A program made the position numbers and the translations under genes. Positions 16,305-34,560 of a DNA stretch of 64,000 nt are shown piece after piece. The stretch comes from Podarcis melisellensis (lineage: Eukaryota). The stretch is taken from NCBI GenBank assembly GCA_964234715.1, contig OZ174281.1, one strand, 5' to 3'. The notes under the pieces were generated by a model that had not been told where the DNA came from, made no database searches, and saw only the letters and a program-made list of their open reading frames with translations. Each line of letters begins with the position of its first letter. The first letter of the stretch is position 1.

Positions 16305-17537
16305 AGGCATTCCTGGAGGATGCGGACCATTTGGATCCCTTCCAATCTGGATTCTGGCCTCATCATGGGCTGAAACTGCCTTGGTTGTGCTGGCTGATGA
16401 TCTCTGGCGGGCTAGGGACAGAGCTGTTTCCCAGTTCTGCTGGATCGCTCAGGAGCCTTTGATACCATCGATCATGACATCCTTCTGGACTGTCTAGAGA
16501 AGCTGGGGGCACTGTTATACAGTGGTTCCACTCCTTTCTCCTGGACTGTGTCCAGAAAGTGGTGTTGGGGGATGAGTGTTCAGACCTCTGGGCTCTCACT
16601 TGTGGGGTGCCTCAGGGTTCCGTCCTCTCCCCTATGCTTTTTAATATCCATATGAAGCCAATGGGAGAGATCATCAGGGGGTTTGGGCTGGGTGTTAATC
16701 AGTATGCAGATGATACCCAGCTCTACCTCTCTTTCAAATCAGAACCAGCAAAGACGGTGAAGGTCCTGTGTGAGTGTCTGGAGGCGGTTGGAGGATGGAT
16801 GGCCGCTAACAGATTGAGGTTGAATCCTGACAAGACTGAAGTACTGTTTTGTGGGGACGGGGCAGGTGGGTGACAGACTCCTTGGTCCTGAATGGGGTAA
16901 CTGTGCCCCTGAAGGAGCAGGTGCGCAGTCATTTTGGACTCACAGCTGTCCATGGAGGTACAGGTCAATTCTGTGTCCAGGGCAGCTGTCTACCAGCTCC
17001 ATCTGGTACACGGCCTAAGACCCTACCTGCCTGCAGACTGTCTCGCCAGAGTGGTGCATGCTCTAGTTATATCCCGTGGGGCTACCTCTGAAGGTGACTT
17101 GGAAACTGCAATTAATCCTGAATGCAGCAGCTAGACTGGTGACTGGGAGTGGCCGCCAAGACCATATAACTGAAAGACCTACATTGGCTCCCAGTACGTT
17201 TCTGAGCACAATTCAAAGTGTTGGTGCTGACCTTTAAGCCCTAAACAGCCTCAGCTCACTGCAAGAAGTGAGATTACAGGGAACAAGGCAGAGGACCTTC
17301 TCAGTAGTGGCGCCCACCCTGTGGAACGCCCTCCCATCAGATGTCAAGGAAATAAACAACTATCTGACTTTTAGAAGACATCTGAAGACAGCCCTGTTCT
17401 GGGAAGTTTTTAATGTTTGAAGTTTTATTCTGTTTTTAATGTTCTGTTGAAAGCTGCCCAGAGTGGCTGGGGAAACCCAGCCAGATGGGTGGGGCAGAAA
17501 TAATTTATATAATTTATTGTTGTTGTTGTTGTTGTTA
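16305..17537 (+). mobile_element. 5'-truncated, degenerate L2-clade LINE (RT fragment plus 3' end) in an MPPE1 intron
   Basis: GVPQGSVLSPMLFNI...QYADDTQLY...RLNPDKTE; frameshifts; (TTG)n tail. Confidence 0.9.
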
Positions 17538-26515: not shown

Positions 26516-27186
26516 TGAAAACGCTTCTGTTTGCAATTATACCAATAATTTATATTTATTTCTGCAGTTCACCCAGTGAGCACCTTTGGTAACAATCGAG
26601 CTAACACGAAGCAACAGCAAAGTTCAGGTGAAAGCCATGGAATGAAGCATCTTTTCTCTCGCCATTTTGTGTGTGGAACCTCCAAGAGCGAAGAGCTTTG
26701 CTCAACTCAAAAGCTTGCTCGCTCGCTACTGTTGTGACCCGTTTTTTAGTTGGTTGTAACAAAGACATTATACATCGGCTGTATTTGGATGGAAATAGAG
26801 AGATAACGATGTTTAATTTTACCTAATGGATCAGCGAGGCAACTTGCAATTTTTGTCAGCTTTTAAGAGCCACCCGACTACTTTGCAAGCATCTCCCAGG
26901 TACTGAGTAAACGGCATCATAAAACGAGCCCGCCTCTATTACAATGACCCTCCTACCGCCAAGGAGGAAGGAAAGCCCCAACAATATATTTCTTTTTGGT
27001 AGACCTGAGAAAAGGTCAAAGAGGCAGAATAAAGCCAGGCTTGTACATATAACTTTCTCCTGCAGAAGGGGAGGCATTTCTAAGGGGAAACTACCGAAGG
27101 CGGAAGCAAACCTCTTTCCTCTCACAATAAACAACCCGCTTCAAGGTGGTGCTGTTACTGCTGCTGCAGCAGCTGCTGCTACTCAC

Positions 27187-27570
27187 CCCTGAGAGGAAAC
27201 TCCCGCCAGGAGCAGAGCGAGGCTTCCCGCGTGCAAAGACGGAGGGCGGATAAACTCCCCGCCGCTTTGCACGTGTCCCCCCGCACGTCTGGAGCGGCGC
27301 TTCCTGCGGCATCCGTGGAACGGCGAAGAGCTCCCACTCCGGAGGTCAGGAAAGCGACCGAAGCACTTGCTATTGGATGCCTCGCTTCCTGAATCGCCTC
27401 GTTCTCCAGTCTTGCGCGCCTCTCATTGGCGCCGCGGAGGCAGCAGTTTGATTGGCCGCCGCGTCGCTCTGGGCTGGAGCATGGCGGCTGCTGCTCGCTC
27501 AGAGATGGTTATCCTGGGCAGCTGTCCCTGCGCAGCTGAGGCGGAGGGCGCGCAAGGGCGATGCAGGTGA
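27187..27570 (-). promoter_or_regulatory. MPPE1: MPPE1 CpG-island promoter and probable non-coding exon 1
   Basis: CpG-rich. Minus-strand donor AGGG|GTGAGT at 27186. Three CCAAT boxes (ATTGG at 27372, 27425, 27451), E-box CACGTG ~27270, YY1-like ATGGCGG at 27481. Confidence 0.7.
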
Positions 27571-28907
27571 CTCGGGGTAGTTGGTTTCATGAACTTAGCA
27601 AGAGGAAACAATAGTTCGTTCAAATTTATTCATTTTTATTATTTATTAGTTCATGCACACACAGCATTCCTTTCTCCCATCTCTCTGTTTTGTGTTTTTC
27701 CTGCCTGTGAAGAGCTTGTAAGCTTTGTAGCCTCTTCAGAGGCCCTCGCCAAGTGTGAAGCGACTGGTAGCTACTGGAGAAAAGGCTTTTTTGGGCGGTG
27801 GCATCCCAGTTACAGAATGCCCTCCCTAGAGAAGCCAACCAGGCGCCTTGTGAGCCTTTGAAACCACTTGATCTTGGATCTGCTGCCTGATGCAGTGGCA
27901 AGATGTGGCTTAACAGAAGGTTACTCTAACCAAGATTTAAGAGCTGCTCATTGTGAGACAGACTCTGGAATAGGAATTCAACTGGTTTTGGATGGGGAAG
28001 TACTCCTTTCCATATTGGATCACTGCAGCAGGTCTACCTTTGAAGAGTCTTCAGAAGTTACATTTCGCCCAGAATACAGCAGCAAGCATGTTAATGGGTA
28101 CTTGTTCCTGCCCTGTACTTGTTACTAGATTCCCTTTCAAGCATAAAGCAAAATGTTGGTGATTGCATTTGAAGCCCAAAACGACTCAGATGCAGGATAT
28201 ATTGGGAACCACCACCTCTCACCCTCTAAAGACCCAGTAAAAATATCCTTCTCTGTGTCTCACTTGCAATGGAGGTGCAATTGGCCAGGAATGCCCATGC
28301 CCAGATTATGAAATACCTTGCCCCAGAAGTATTGTTGGGCCTGTTGGGAGTTTGGTGGGAGAACTATAGTTAATGAGCATACAAGGATTGTGTTTTTGTT
28401 TCTCCACCCCACCCCAGCTTAATTTTAATGAATGTGTTGTGTTTGTTGTTTTGTTTTGTTTTTGTAAAAATGCCTTGAGTTGCTTGTGGTGGGAAAAGGC
28501 ATCTAATAAATGTAATTAATAATAATATATCAGTTTCATCATGGCTTGTTTGAACTAACCACAATGACGCACCATGGGTATAATGAGGATTTGTTCAAAT
28601 TAAAACTGAATGCTTCTGATCTCTGTCACATACGACAGAAAGAGAGGGGACCGGGGTTTTCAAGAACAAGGTTCATGAAGGTACATTCATATAATGCTAA
28701 ACCAAAGTTTAGTGTTACATCCAAAACCGAGAAATAACTTATTAAAGATTCAGAAAGGCATAAAGGCACTGCACAAATTATGCAAACAATTAAAAATTGG
28801 TCAAAGTCATGATTTTATTGCAAAATAAGTGCCTTCCTCATAAGCAAGTTAATATTACAAAGTACAGTCAATATTAAACTGTTTATTCATAATCTTGGTT
28901 GAACATT

Positions 28908-29078
28908 TTATTTCCACGATTTATTTAAAGTTCCACGATGGCTACCAGCTGTTAAAGTTGATGTAAAAGTGATTCCATATCTTGAACTTAGTTGTTTCAA
29001 ACACTTTTCATATTGAGTATTAAGTTTTATGGCTTCTTGAAGTGCATATTTTAGATCTTCTATTTCATCAAAAAAATC
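28908..29078 (-). CDS. CEP290-like gene exon 7 (DFFDEIEDLKYALQEAIKLNTQYEKCLKQLSSRYGITFTSTLTAGSHRGTLNKSWK*)
   Basis: tttttag| acceptor, TAA stop, AATAAA about 20 nt downstream; FF[DE]EIEDLKY motif as in the CEP290 C-terminus. Confidence 0.9.
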   Translation of the reverse strand, partial: DFFDEIEDLKYALQEAIKLNTQYEKCLKQLSSRYGITFTSTLTAGSHRGTLNKSWK

Positions 29079-29672
29079 CTAAAAAGTAATACCACACACA
29101 GTATTTTAATTAAGTACTACTTCCTAGTTTGTCCATTCTTGTATTCATCACTGAAGTAGTCTTATAGGAAACAAACCATCTTTAATAAAAAAAAAAAGTT
29201 TTACAAGAACTCAAGATTTGCTAATGAAAAGCCCAAATTTTAATTTGCTTGGAATATTACTCCTCTTAACATCTAACAGATGCAAGATTCTAATCAATGG
29301 AAGATTTTGTGAACTACAATGTGTGCCAAATCCTATTCAACAAGTAATTAGAGGACTTCTGGACAAGTTCACAGTGTGGTACTGAAGGCTTGGCTTGATT
29401 ACAATTTTTTTCCGTTAATTTCTCAGTTAGTTTGGGATGTTGTTTTGTTTGTACACTGAAAAAGACCAGTCAAAGAAATGAATTCAACTGCTCATTTATT
29501 AAACCTAAACTGTTGGACTGCCCCTATCCTGCGACCTGTCCAGTCGGATTGTCCCTTCTCCCCCACTTTACATTTTATAACATTTATGTGTTTTAGTATT
29601 TGAAAACTAAATCACCTTGGATGTTTAGGCAGAAAGGTGGTATATAAGTGCAATAAGTAATGATAAAGTTAC

Positions 29673-29770
29673 CTTATCTAACGCAGCAAGCTCATTTCTC
29701 AACATTCTTCTTTCTTTAGACAATGATTCATTTTCCATCTTCAGACGCTGAATCTCAAAAAGCAGTTGGT
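29673..29770 (-). CDS. CEP290-like gene exon 6 (DQLLFEIQRLKMENESLSKERRMLRNELAALDK)
   Basis: tactatag|...AAG|gtaac, 98 bp. Confidence 0.88.
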
Positions 29771-30025
29771 CTATAGTACAATAAAAACCATTAGGAGCTC
29801 ACTAAAAGATAAAATCATGTTACATATTCATATTTTTAAAAATATGCTTATATCTTCAGGCAATTTTCTTTTCTAATAACGCCCTGTATCAAAGAAAGTA
29901 TTGGAATTTAACCCAGCTAGCTGGAAACCTCCATGAATATTGTCAATACTGTTTCAGTTATAATTTTAATAACTTTATTCAGACATAACATGCCAAAGAA
30001 ACATGATCACAAAGTATATGTTTAC

Positions 30026-30194
30026 CTAAATATTTGCAGGAACAGCTCCCCTTCTTTTTACACATACATTTGTAAGACCCATTTTTTTTCTGTAGTGGAT
30101 CAGTTTTGTCCTTTGGTAACATCTTTTTACTTTCCAGCTCCTTCATCTTTTGGTTTGCTAAGTGAAGTTGGTGTTCCATATCATTAATTTTAAT
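30026..30194 (-). CDS. CEP290-like gene exon 5 (IKINDMEHQLHLANQKMKELESKK...YKCMCKKKGSCSCKYL)
   Basis: ttttatcatag|...G|gtaaac, 169 bp. Confidence 0.85.
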
Positions 30195-31055
30195 CTATGA
30201 TAAAATAGTAGAGTATTTGTAATAAGCATTTAAATTAATACTATATCTAGCATCCTTGGAAGCACACTTTACACACTTTACTAAACTTTATTGTCATCAG
30301 AAGCTAGCAACAAAAATGTGAGAGAAAGGGAGTCAGATTCCCATCAAAATCAAAAGATGAAAGTGTGAGATGGAAATGAGAAATATTATAGACTCAATCT
30401 ATGCCTGCAACATTTCATACATTGCATATTGTTCATTTTGTGTCAGTTATATGAACTTTTACTAGCGTCTTCAGGGCTGTCTGCTATACTCATCTGTTGG
30501 CAGGGGTGCATGCAGCTCCAATCCAATAAATGCACTATGCAAGCAACTCCAAACACTAAACACAATGTCTTTCATCCATACAGGATCTTAAACATGCAGC
30601 CACGTTTTAAAGAAAATATCTGCTTGCTTATTTTTTTCTTTATGCAAATCACCTTTGCTACATCAGATGCTGAAAGCTAATGTCTATCCCATGCTTCCCA
30701 AGAGTTTGGAGCTTATAGTAACAGTTAGGCACAATAAAAACAAAATGTCCAATTAAATTATGGTTAATTATCCAACACTTGACTAATTCTGGCTATTAAA
30801 ATGCCAGCCTAAAGAAGGCTCCTCCCCTAACACCCCACTACTTATTGCATTATCCCCATATCAGATAAAACCTAATTTACAGTAGGGAATCACTGAGATT
30901 GGTATTGTTTGAGGGAAATGTCATGAGGACTATGCAGATTTGATGGAAACACAAATAGCTGAAAACACACAGTAAACTCCAGTGTGGACAAGCCCTAAAT
31001 CTTGAGCATTCTTTTAAAGTAAGAGTTTACATGAAATCATATGACCAGAACTTAC

Positions 31056-31146
31056 AGAAAGTCTTGCAATGGTTTCACATTGTCCTTGGTTTGTTTTTAA
31101 TTCTTTATTATACCTTTTCTGTAGATTATGATACAACTGGAGTACT
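31056..31146 (-). CDS. CEP290-like gene exon 4 (VLQLYHNLQKRYNKELKTNQGQCETIARLS)
   Basis: tgtttcag|...TCT|gtaag, 91 bp. Confidence 0.85.
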
Positions 31147-32002
31147 CTGAAACAGCAAACAGACAAGAATGATAACAAACTGCTGATTTTCCTAATACAG
31201 ATATAGAAATGCTTGTTCAAACCCCTCTGAAACGAACTGGCAGCATCTGGCAGCAGGGCTTGGTGGATTCTATTCACTACATGCAAAATGTTTGTTTTGA
31301 TTTGATTTGATAAACACTGAAATCCAGGATGTGAAAGATGAGGTTTACGGAGGTGGAGTGGCTGGGTGTGGGTGACAATGATGAGTAAAAAAAGAGAAAA
31401 AGGCAAGTATACCGGGAGAGGCCTCAAAGAACCAACAAACTCAGGGCTGCCCTTGGCCTATCACTGCTGGCCACACTTCCAGGACTACAACTCAGCTGGG
31501 GAATGAAGCAGAAGGAAGCTGAGATGGGGAAGTTAGAGACATGACCAGCAGAAAATGACTCCCTGCCCAACTCTACAGATCTGAGAAAGACTATAGCAAT
31601 AACAGCAGTGGCAGCAGGAAGGGGAACCCTAATTCCCTACTGTCCCCAGTGAGATCTAGAGTAAAAAGAATCTAACTGAGGGCTTGGTGACACAATTTTA
31701 AAATGGCCTAGCTGACAAAAGCAAGATTTGCTAGCTGATACTAAGTGTTCATTGTGAGAAAATAATGTAACTCACACAGCAGTAAATTGGATGAATCCAC
31801 TGACAAAAATGTAATACGCCAAAATAGAAGCTCATTTTTAAAAAATGAGAAGGAATTGTTTTTCTTTATCCTCTGCTGCAATACTATTCACACTTAACTG
31901 GAAATACATCTCCATGACCGCAAGCAGACTAATGTTTTAAGTAAATATGCAAAGAATCAGATTCATAGCAGAGATACATCTAACTATACTTGCACAACTT
32001 AC

Positions 32003-32089
32003 CTAGCATTTTCCTTTACTCCTTCATGTTCCTTACGATAAAACCCATCGTCTTTAAGGGGTAAGTGGATTTCTGTTTGAACTGGCACA
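32003..32089 (-). CDS. CEP290-like gene exon 3 (DVPVQTEIHLPLKDDGFYRKEHEGVKENAR)
   Basis: acttag|...AG|gtaag, 87 bp, phase 2-2. Confidence 0.8.
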
Positions 32090-33374
32090 CTAAGTTAAAC
32101 AAATATGATAACTTAAAATCTCTTCCCCAAGCATGAACATTTTTCTCTTTCTTAATAGTATATTCTGAAGCAATTAAAAACGTTAATGCGAAAAATAATC
32201 TGTGGCCTCAAAAGCTACATACTTGTATTTTGATTTTTATCATCTGGATATATTAGGAAAAACAGCAGTGAGATAACGGAAGTTCAAAAAAGTACATTAT
32301 CATTGATCATAGAACATGGTCCCATAGTCTAAAGGCACAAGCACATCAGAACATGGTATGAAGGCTATCAGTTTGCTGAGGCTAAGCAGGTCTAGGTCTG
32401 GCAAGTACCTATATAGGAGACACCCTAGGAACCACATGTACACTGCTTTGGGGTATGACTGGAAAAAGATGGGATATAAATGTATGGGGGGAACTGAATA
32501 TATATGTTCATTAATTTTTTTTCAGCTGGACAGTCAAGATTTACATTTGGTGAAATGGGTTTTTTTTTGCTCAGACAACAATATTTTCCCCCAGAAATAA
32601 TATTTCCACCTCTTAAAAAGCATTAATATATCCCATTTTCAGACAATGAATAAGTAATTCATTCAATGACAAATTTACTTGCCCCAATTTTTATTATTAT
32701 ATATAAACTACTACTGTGAACATAGTCCTTGTTCAATGTCTTCAACTCACACAGACTTGCTTTAGGAGTACTTTAATGTAAAAACTGTGCAAATATTACC
32801 TAAAGTACTACATCAAATATGACCATAAGAACAATTATGGATTCTCAAACTACTGCTTCTTAAGTCAGCTTTCCTATAATATCTCATGGCTGCAGTCTGC
32901 ATTAGGTACGTCAAAAAGCTATGAAGTCTGTGGAAGTATATAATGAGCTATTTGAAGACCCAGCACAATTTACAGAGCATGGCTGCGCATGGGAGACAAT
33001 ATCTGCCTAATCATCCCAAAAAATCTAATGAGTCAAGAAGAGGAATTAATGTTCAATATTTATCCTTCTTCAAGAGAAAAGTAAGTATAAACCCATCTAT
33101 CCAGAAACGTACTTTTTCATGAGTCATAGTATAAACACTCCCAAAACTCAAATTTAAATGTTTTGAAGAGTGTTTAAAATTATTTCCCAGGCTGCAAAGT
33201 GCAACCTTACTTCAAACCTGATGCATAGCAAACTACAACCTGTGCTCTCCCTGCCCAAGGGTTTGTCAAACTACAGATCCTATCACCCCTGGCCATTGGC
33301 TATGCTGGCTGGGTCTAAACCAGATCTTTAGCTGGGAACATGGACATCTAAGGAGCAAAGGAGCAAAATCTTAC

Positions 33375-33517
33375 TCTTTCTTTGTGACACAAATAGGCAG
33401 CGACTTCTTTTGCCCTTGCAGTTTTTCTTGTAACTGTGCCCAATCATATTCCAACTGCTTGTTTTTTAGGCGCACATGCCTCAGCTTTTTAAGCAGCAAC
33501 TGATTTTCTTGCTGGAG
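33375..33517 (-). CDS. CEP290-like gene exon 2 (LQQENQLLLKKLRHVRLKNKQLEYDWAQLQEKLQGQKKSLPICVTKK)
   Basis: ttcccttttccag|...GA|gtaag, 143 bp, coiled-coil character. Confidence 0.85.
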
Positions 33518-33956
33518 CTGGAAAAGGGAAGGAAAAAACGTTTCTTATGTTAGAAACAGATGCAGTTAGTTAACTAGTGCAATGGAATAGTTCTCACTGT
33601 GTAAAACACCCTACTTTAGCTTTCCTTCTTTAAGGATGTTCTCCCTTTAACCAAAATACTTGCAAAACCTAACCTAGAATAGAAAGTTCTTTGCCTGTAT
33701 TATTATTATTCCGAAGTGAGATACCACAACCCAAAAGGCTCTCGCTGCAGGTAACGGGGTGGACGGGGTGTGGCAGTAAGAAGGAAATTTGCAGAGGACC
33801 TCAATGCACAAGAGAGGCTGCTGTGTGTTTGGAACAAGGGCAGAAGATGCGGGGAGACAGCGGGAGCCGTCCAGCTGCCACCGCCTTGTGGTGAACCGAA
33901 TGCGTCTCTCTAGACACTGACAGAAGCCGCCCGGGGAGGCACTTTCCGTCACTCAC

Positions 33957-33989
33957 TTGGAGGCACTTGTGAACTGACGGCAGCGCCAT
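33957..33989 (-). CDS. CEP290-like gene exon 1 (MALPSVHKCLQ)
   Basis: ATG in CpG island, donor CAA|gtgagt; start codon choice (33989 vs 34034) uncertain. Confidence 0.7.
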
Positions 33990-34039
33990 CCACTTCCCTC
34001 CTACAGCCTCCCACACGGAGTGGACGCCAAACATCCGGG

Positions 34040-34560
34040 GAGGGTCACGTGCCCTTCCCCGAAAGATACAACCAATGAAACGGCGGGAGGGGAGGGGCCT
34101 TCCTTTTTAGCGGGCCGTAGCCGCCGGGTTTCCAAGTTCAATGGCTTAAACTTAAAAGCCTATTATCTGCGACGAGTTTGCAAAGGGAGAAAAGGCCCCC
34201 ATGTACGAGCTGTCCAATGTCGCGCCTGCGCTACATGAGTAAAAGTAGTACGGATGGATACAGACGGATAAAACCATGTATCCTGCGCCCGATGAATATT
34301 ATAAAAACCCTGCCTACTCCTAGGCGGGCCCCACGCCGCTAAAGCGCAAGTGGTGAAAGGTAGCGAAACCGACTTGTTTATGTTGGAGGGACGAATTCTA
34401 TGAGGTCATCCAAATGCGACTGCGGTTTCAGGCCCCCCTTCGGAATTTCGGCTTCTGGGTTACCATGGTGACAAGATTCTGACTTGGCTAAGTGACCCCG
34501 TGTCACCAGCCCAGCACTGAAACGTAACAAAGGGATAGCGATTCGGTTTCGAAAGGAACT
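34040..34560 (-). promoter_or_regulatory. CpG-rich promoter of the CEP290-like gene with RFX X-box (GTTACCATGGTGAC, 34459-34472)
   Basis: The reverse complement GTCACCATGGTAAC matches the X-box consensus GTHNYYATRRNAAC; CCAAT motifs near 34072 and 34214; CpG-rich. Confidence 0.65.

Follow-up and report, generated by a model that had tools for sequence, protein, structure and literature searches.

CEP290 (NPHP6), a ~290-kDa protein of the transition zone, is encoded by one of the genes most often mutated in ciliopathies, and work continues on how its C-terminus is anchored at the axoneme. Within the transition zone that C-terminus occupies the axoneme side, where Cep162 retains it, and it can associate with itself (PMC10914257). 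The nearest described stand-alone C-terminal piece is fly Cep290-C (residues 1385–1978), an engineered ~600-residue fragment rather than a natural gene, which takes up the same axoneme-side position on its own, by way of Cep162 and endogenous Cep290; its binding part was not mapped to the terminal module (PMC10914257). A CEP290 review held no data on the C-terminal domain. Databases also list short animal proteins under a CEP290-like name. Here we analyze one of them, encoded in a 64,000-nucleotide stretch of contig OZ174281.1 from Podarcis melisellensis (the whole stretch is called the window below). Seven exons on the minus strand, from 34034 to 28908, encode a protein whose last third is predicted to be homologous to the extreme C-terminus of CEP290 and for which we cautiously favor a role linked to the cilium or centrosome.

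We joined the seven exons by script. Their phases are compatible, the frame is uninterrupted and all six introns run from GT to AG with pyrimidine-rich acceptors. Translation from the first ATG (34034) gives 278 amino acids (aa), and from an in-frame second ATG (33989) 263 aa. The second start, MALPSVHKCLQ, is the one kept throughout the family; the 15 codons ahead of this conserved Met, with which squamate models begin, are a squamate addition. The original prediction had described these exons, their start in a CpG island and the AATAAA behind the stop, all of which we verified. Its 263 aa for 28908–34034 mixed the two starts: the length fits the second ATG and the end coordinate the first.

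Evidence for splicing came from a search of sequencing runs, which returned genomic holders and 18 small runs containing 8–14% of the words, approximately the share of the exons. We examined four of the 18, from four studies and three related lizard organisms, whose RNA nature is presumed; their contigs are 90–99% identical to the window and carry no strand or level information. All six joints were found in contigs of the four runs at exactly the predicted positions, each reading CT..AC on the plus strand: 29077/29672 (one place rightward fits equally), 29770/30026, 30194/31056, 31146/32003, 32089/33375 and 33517/33957. The six introns were thus skipped exactly, as the original prediction required of junction reads. 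One contig of run X5, 882 nucleotides (nt) long, spans exons 7 to 2 plus the joint of exon 2 with exon 1, entering the latter by 26 nt. Upstream, one contig reaches 112 nt past the first ATG, to 34146; the 3′ ends of the contigs fall at 28800–28841, two of them 11–14 nt beyond the second AATAAA. Intron coverage was sparse and patchy. The spliced form is present in four independent data sets, well beyond what chance would give, and transcription of the gene from a CpG-island promoter yields a message of seven spliced exons whose poly(A) site lies ~1 kb upstream of the promoter of the neighboring gene MPPE1. The parts of the gene are as follows:

33700..34420, no strand: CpG island and promoter region, GC 0.54, CpG observed/expected ratio (o/e) 0.83; contains the 5′ end of the gene.
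34035..34146, minus strand: 5′ untranslated region (UTR), minimum extent, from contig 20 of run X9, which runs from exon 2 through exon 1 to 34146.
33957..34034, minus strand: exon 1, coding part, donor CAA/GTGAGT; holds both ATGs; joint 33517/33957 in contigs of X5 and X9.
33375..33517, minus strand: exon 2, 143 nt; predicted first coiled-coil helix.
32003..32089, minus strand: exon 3, 87 nt, in-frame cassette; predicted disordered linker with a DVxVQTE motif.
31056..31146, minus strand: exon 4, 91 nt; conserved block LLQMYNxLQKRYxKExKxN.
30026..30194, minus strand: exon 5, 169 nt; end of the predicted long central helix and a basic, cysteine-rich linker KCMCKKKGSCSCKYL.
29673..29770, minus strand: exon 6, 98 nt; predicted helix running into the CEP290-like module; the most constrained exon, with nonsynonymous differences (pN) of 0.00–0.06 within squamates.
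28908..29078, minus strand: exon 7, coding part, ending in TAA; module DFFDEIEDLKYALQ... common to the CEP290 C-terminus.
28800..28907, minus strand: 3′ UTR, with AATAAA at 28887–28882 and 28819–28814.

Exon 3 was included in all four runs and is missing from a Lacerta agilis isoform X2 protein (P0113). In run X10 (organism C), exon 2 was joined to 33873 and not to 33957 (33515/33873), with non-canonical ends AG..CC; this may reflect the use of a different first-exon donor by that organism, or else an artifact of aligning at 90–95% identity. A contig of run X9 (organism B) carries A>T at 28910 and T>C at 28911–28913, which would abolish the TAA and add a few tail residues; the extreme C-terminal tail is variable across the family. 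Within intron 2, ~35–40 nt at 33270–33320 were matched by many unrelated contigs with loose ends on both sides (local depth up to 59), and this stretch is probably a fragment of an interspersed repeat expressed elsewhere.

For homology searches, folding and comparisons, we used single exons or database orthologues as queries. Exon 7 alone (56 aa), searched exhaustively with HMMER against 1.84 billion representative proteins, gave 91 matches at E-values (E) up to 0.001; most of the full-length ones are proteins of 228–283 aa matched at their very C-terminus. When family proteins were compared with the window by tblastn, all seven exons were matched, and two 278-aa Podarcis proteins were 86–98% identical to it per exon. 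One of the two is Podarcis muralis LOC114600757 (278 aa), of which we identify the window gene, on these identities, as the orthologue. Other catalogued examples are Pogona vitticeps LOC110078905 (264 aa), a Terrapene XP entry (263 aa), a Chiloscyllium protein (255 aa) and Nematostella XP_032230560 (266 aa). With them the window gene shares a length class of ~230–280 aa encoded by several small exons, a seven-exon layout, an N-terminal motif M.[LM]P.[VI]H.C.Q that ends exactly at intron 1, a central LLQMYNxLQKRYEKExKxN block and the C-terminal module (exons 4, 6 and 7), and in vertebrates the neighbors IMPA2 and MPPE1. The invariant E, D, F, E, D, K, N and Y of a 56-member alignment are all present in the window protein, and we saw no substantial difference between this copy, from another lacertid, and the rest of the family. 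It is almost certainly a real orthologous coding gene.

The family is both constrained and old. The original prediction had named a ratio of nonsynonymous to synonymous change (dN/dS) near 1 as a sign against it; a codon comparison, exon by exon, with six orthologous loci gave 0.18–0.34 (P. lilfordi 0.24, Pogona 0.22, Anolis 0.25, Eublepharis 0.34, Terrapene 0.21 and Crocodylus 0.18), with the least change in exons 6 and 7; the gene is under purifying selection. Four blocks stand out as conserved in alignments of 29 and 56 members, placozoan to bird: the initial M.[LM]P.[VI]H.C.QL..ENE, then RD.QVQTE, then LLQMYN.LQKRYEKE.K.N and the terminal L.NEL.GLDK.FF[DE]EIEDLKYALQ..KLN..YEK. Lizard, turtle, crocodile, shark and Nematostella all have intron 1 inserted immediately behind '...C.Q'. 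Among vertebrates, members were found in squamates, turtles, crocodilians, more than 60 bird species, three caecilians, a lungfish, bichirs, sturgeons, paddlefish, sharks and rays; outside vertebrates, they were found in a tunicate, sea urchins, Lottia (mollusc), Capitella (annelid), Macrostomum (flatworm), Nematostella (cnidarian) and Trichoplax (placozoan). A search with the slowly evolving turtle protein returned 132 relatives, with sharks at 48–50% identity, and no mammal, frog, salamander or teleost protein among annotated proteins, the only material searched for those groups. This fits a loss of the family in mammals, frogs, salamanders and teleosts, of which the original prediction had suggested the mammalian part; what the search shows directly is missing annotation.

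The same prediction had called the gene hidden. The same model is already annotated in P. muralis (LOC114600757) and P. lilfordi, and the family is catalogued in well over a hundred non-mammalian animals under a public name that states its CEP290 likeness. The gene is neither hidden nor new: it is a further orthologue of a catalogued, unstudied family that is much older than was first supposed.

No known domain was recognized. Pfam searches with every exon, six relatives and all 56 aligned members gave only sub-threshold generic coiled-coil matches (TMF_DNA_bd, ZapB, HALZ), and sequence searches of the PDB with exon 7 and the family profile gave coiled-coil noise only (IpaB, Spc42, MafG). In the ESM Atlas, exon 7 found nothing above 0.79, and the Podarcis orthologue found assorted coiled-coil clusters with ~150 of 256 features in common, below the level for true members; some of these clusters may be the family's own, misnamed. 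A profile search with the 29-member alignment scored only the 8000 candidates sharing most words, so that its reach was no greater than that of a single sequence. Two apparent matches were set aside. P0004, a 2551-aa protein of Clavelina lepadiformis, is not CEP290: the module occurs in it three times in identical form, at 1953, 2222 and 2486, and it is apparently a single model into which three tandem copies of the short gene were merged. The match to P0011, a TPR/kinase protein, is due to chance.

We then compared the module with CEP290. Across the whole library of 1.84 billion proteins, exon 7 matched fragment P0079, named 'putative centrosomal protein of 290 kDa', at E 3.7e-4; this fragment ends in ...SPVNFPIY, as vertebrate CEP290 does. 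The pairwise alignment with P0079 is free of gaps, as the by-eye alignment of the original prediction had been, with 50% identity over 46 residues for exon 7 and 48% over 60 for the Podarcis protein. The family profile matched a 412-aa protein named CEP290 by the Joint Genome Institute (JGI) at E 3.6e-12, and hhalign, over 87 columns that stop at the motif, gave a probability of 97.3% with E 2.2e-11. The terminal module is thus predicted to be homologous to the extreme C-terminus of CEP290, with the FF[DE]EIEDLKY motif and its flanking helices alike in both. The short protein is about a tenth of the size, is encoded at a different locus and gave no match elsewhere in CEP290. Its 278 aa compare with ~2000–2500 aa for CEP290 proper, and no Pfam CEP290 coiled-coil region was found in any exon or in the 56 members; the one CEP290-proper feature found was the extreme C-terminal FFEEIEDLKY module, as judged against fragments named CEP290. 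The N-terminal two thirds have conserved motifs of their own and matched neither CEP290 nor anything known in Pfam and PDB profile searches. The label 'mini-CEP290', under which the gene had first been described, is not supported: only ~60–90 C-terminal residues are CEP290-like.

The module comes in two types. The variant FFEEIEDLKYNY... occurs in 13 of the 91 exon 7 matches, P0079 among them, and FFEEIEDLKYALQ... in the other 75; the signature is KYALQ(Q/E)S.KLN in the short family versus KYNY.E.VKKN in CEP290. The intron before the FF motif also seems to lie at a different place in the two. Genomic open-frame fragments of the short type usually read ...QG one codon before FF, which would be a translated cag/G acceptor, and intron 6 of the window lies at the same place; in CEP290-type fragments, again read from genomic open frames, the presumed acceptor is ~12 codons upstream of FF. 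Because the intron places seem different and both types occur in distant animals, the comparison argues for an ancient split of the two module types and not for a recent partial copy.

AlphaFold2, run on the Podarcis orthologue with a 56-row alignment, placed helices at residues 21–65, 90–156, 186–219 and 222–256, most with a predicted local distance difference test (pLDDT) >90, joined by disordered linkers (mean pLDDT 75.9, predicted template modeling score 0.29). The protein is predicted to be almost wholly helical: two long coiled-coil helices are followed by a helix-kink-helix C-terminal module, L..EL.GLDK.FF[DE]EIEDLKYALQ..KLN..YEK. The kink between the last two helices, at LDK/DFF, coincides with the boundary of exons 6 and 7 and with the start of the motif shared with CEP290. 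The second linker is basic and cysteine-rich in vertebrates. Its exon 5 sequence KCMCKKKGSCSCKYL (30026–30080) is kept in sauropsids, is represented by looser cysteine clusters in sharks and sturgeons and is lacking in the invertebrate proteins; possibly it binds metal or serves for lipid attachment.

Control by RFX factors is the usual mark of ciliary genes. Two conserved elements lie upstream of the gene:

34459–34472, minus strand: RFX X-box-like palindrome GTCACCATGGTAAC, 438 nt upstream of the first ATG.
34401–34420, minus strand: second conserved promoter block GTCGCATTTGGATGACCTCA, resembling a cyclic AMP response element (CRE), TGACGTCA in Anolis; has invariant alignment columns and follows the X-box block.

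With the consensus GTHNYY AT RRNAAC, the X-box pattern GTNRCCNNRGYAAC had two matches in the window against 0.21 expected. The site GTCACCATGGTAAC lies within a block that aligns across squamates, being identical in Podarcis and reading GTAACCATGGTAAC in Anolis, GTCACCATGGCAAA in Pogona (one mismatch) and GTTTCCCGGGAAAC in Eublepharis. Crocodylus has a similar site, GTTTCCGTGGCAAC, at −289; the background in the compared loci was ~0.1 site per kb. These matches, as sequence evidence, support control of the gene by RFX factors, and a conserved X-box points to a ciliary role. The second match in the window, GTTGCCATAGCAAC at 2169–2182 on the plus strand, is a near-perfect palindrome upstream of G-alpha (GNAL-like) exons at 5.6–8.8 kb.

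On balance we lean, if only slightly, towards a cilium- or centrosome-linked role for the short protein. Given the published location of the CEP290 C-terminus, its hold by Cep162 and its self-association (PMC10914257), the likeliest reading is that of a dimeric protein of the basal body or transition zone. Such a protein would be controlled by RFX factors and would dimerize through its coiled coils; its CEP290-type terminal module may dock at the axoneme-side location used by the CEP290 C-terminus, binding either the CEP290 tail itself or a shared partner such as CEP162, and docking could help or tune the anchoring of CEP290. This is the localization behavior seen with Cep290-C. Direct pairing with CEP290 or a shared partner is, as a separate step, doubtful. 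When we paired the C-terminal 93 residues of the Podarcis protein with a CEP290 fragment, the score was 0.53, against 0.00 for the best control, with at least 87% contact agreement between runs and a partner pLDDT of at least 71, which lends weak support to the pairing of the module with this fragment. The mark of the test was reached by 51 of 78 solved complexes and 2 of 108 mismatched pairs. Still more improbable, in our judgment, is the fullest form of the idea, in which the family would be an unrecognized pre-bilaterian partner of CEP290, driven by RFX factors, that pairs through its module with the CEP290 tail or CEP162 and sets CEP290 anchoring, and that would have gone unstudied because it was lost in mammals, frogs, teleosts and apparently flies and nematodes.

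Several observations weigh against a ciliary role, and many of them speak equally for a different one. The short protein may be a conserved coiled-coil protein with a non-ciliary job, as a vesicle, cytoskeletal or nuclear adaptor, in which FFEEIEDLKY is a generic element for dimerization or peptide docking that CEP290 also carries; we regard this as possible, if rather unlikely. The CEP290 homology is confined to the last third of the protein (just 60–90 residues), the CEP290 side of our comparisons consisted of database fragments so named and not of a full-length reference, and the N-terminal two thirds have their own motifs and no known relatives. The nearest neighbors by language model are assorted coiled-coil proteins. 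In turtle, shark and Nematostella, the interval −1000..+100 contained no strict X-box, and the squamate candidate is situated upstream of the known 5′ end at a distance of >300 nt. Because cilia form in mammals, frogs and teleosts, none of which has an annotated copy, whatever ciliary role the protein may have can be dispensed with or replaced. The pairing score of 0.53 falls in a band, 0.60 and below, that holds 5 of the 78 solved complexes and all 4 passing mismatches and in which passes are more often wrong than right; since homologous helices are easily placed side by side, the result shifts the odds little. The runs came without disclosed tissue and so do not tie expression to ciliated tissue, and our literature searches found no paper or experiment addressing the family, its name occurring only in gene lists and its motif letters nowhere. 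A non-ciliary job, however, leaves aside that the module has no known homologue other than the tail of a transition-zone protein, and that an X-box sits in a promoter block conserved among squamates, with a second good site in crocodile, at a background as low as that given above.

Two further explanations concern the gene itself. The exons could belong to MPPE1, located ~1 kb downstream in the same orientation, either as alternative upstream exons or as a read-through form. Some public models under the name 'metallophosphoesterase 1' do contain the CEP290-like module: isoforms X3/X4 in Poecile and Zonotrichia (P0144 and P0171; 374 and 340 aa) and 'Metallophosphoesterase 1' of Acipenser (P0008; 283 aa). 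These are likely read-through or merged annotations of two neighboring genes, and an MPPE1 origin is very improbable: the frame stops at a TAA followed by two AATAAA signals, the contigs of all four runs stop at 28800–28841 with none continuing toward MPPE1, most annotations give a stand-alone protein of ~250 aa, and the Nematostella gene stands beside other, unrelated neighbors. MPPE1 also has a CpG island of its own, at 26900–27800 (GC 0.54, o/e 0.78), likely its promoter; as this island begins only ~1 kb past the poly(A) site, the two genes are packed tightly head to tail. A transcribed relic, or a chance open frame without protein function, would agree with runs that are presumed and not certified to be RNA and with support for the gene at the nucleotide level. 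We give this next to no credence. The open frame is intact in dozens of lineages at the low dN/dS given above, residues are invariant from placozoan to bird and intron positions are kept back to Cnidaria; for practical purposes, these conservation data refute it.

A small ancient protein that carries just the terminal module of CEP290 is a handle for asking what that module binds. The absence of an annotated copy from mammals, frogs and teleosts, which include several of the usual laboratory animals, may explain why the family has gone unstudied. For genome annotation, the value of the locus is ordinary, the gene being already in RefSeq for related species; our analysis confirms the model at the level of splicing, identifies the true, conserved start codon, shows how deep among animals the family reaches and how far its CEP290 homology extends (the last third), and describes conserved promoter elements.

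The neighborhood of the gene is conserved. The window holds, in order, G-alpha exons, MPPE1, the gene described here and Inositol_P exons (plus strand, 50–53 kb), and it is collinear with the P. lilfordi locus across both neighbors at 94–95% DNA identity, in keeping with the position between MPPE1 and IMPA2 first given for the gene. A Metallophos gene (MPPE1) is next on the same strand in Podarcis, Pogona, Anolis, Eublepharis, Terrapene and Crocodylus, and an Inositol_P gene (IMPA2) lies divergently upstream in Podarcis and in the shark Chiloscyllium. From sharks to lizards, the gene has kept its position between IMPA2 and MPPE1. In P. lilfordi, ~1.8 kb of intron 4 (locus L001, 13622–15417) is missing from the window at ~30580, an insertion or deletion between close relatives. 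An open reading frame at 16478–16870 on the plus strand, with a reverse-transcriptase domain (RVT_1, E 8e-17), is a fragment of a long interspersed nuclear element (LINE) and apparently lies within an MPPE1 intron.

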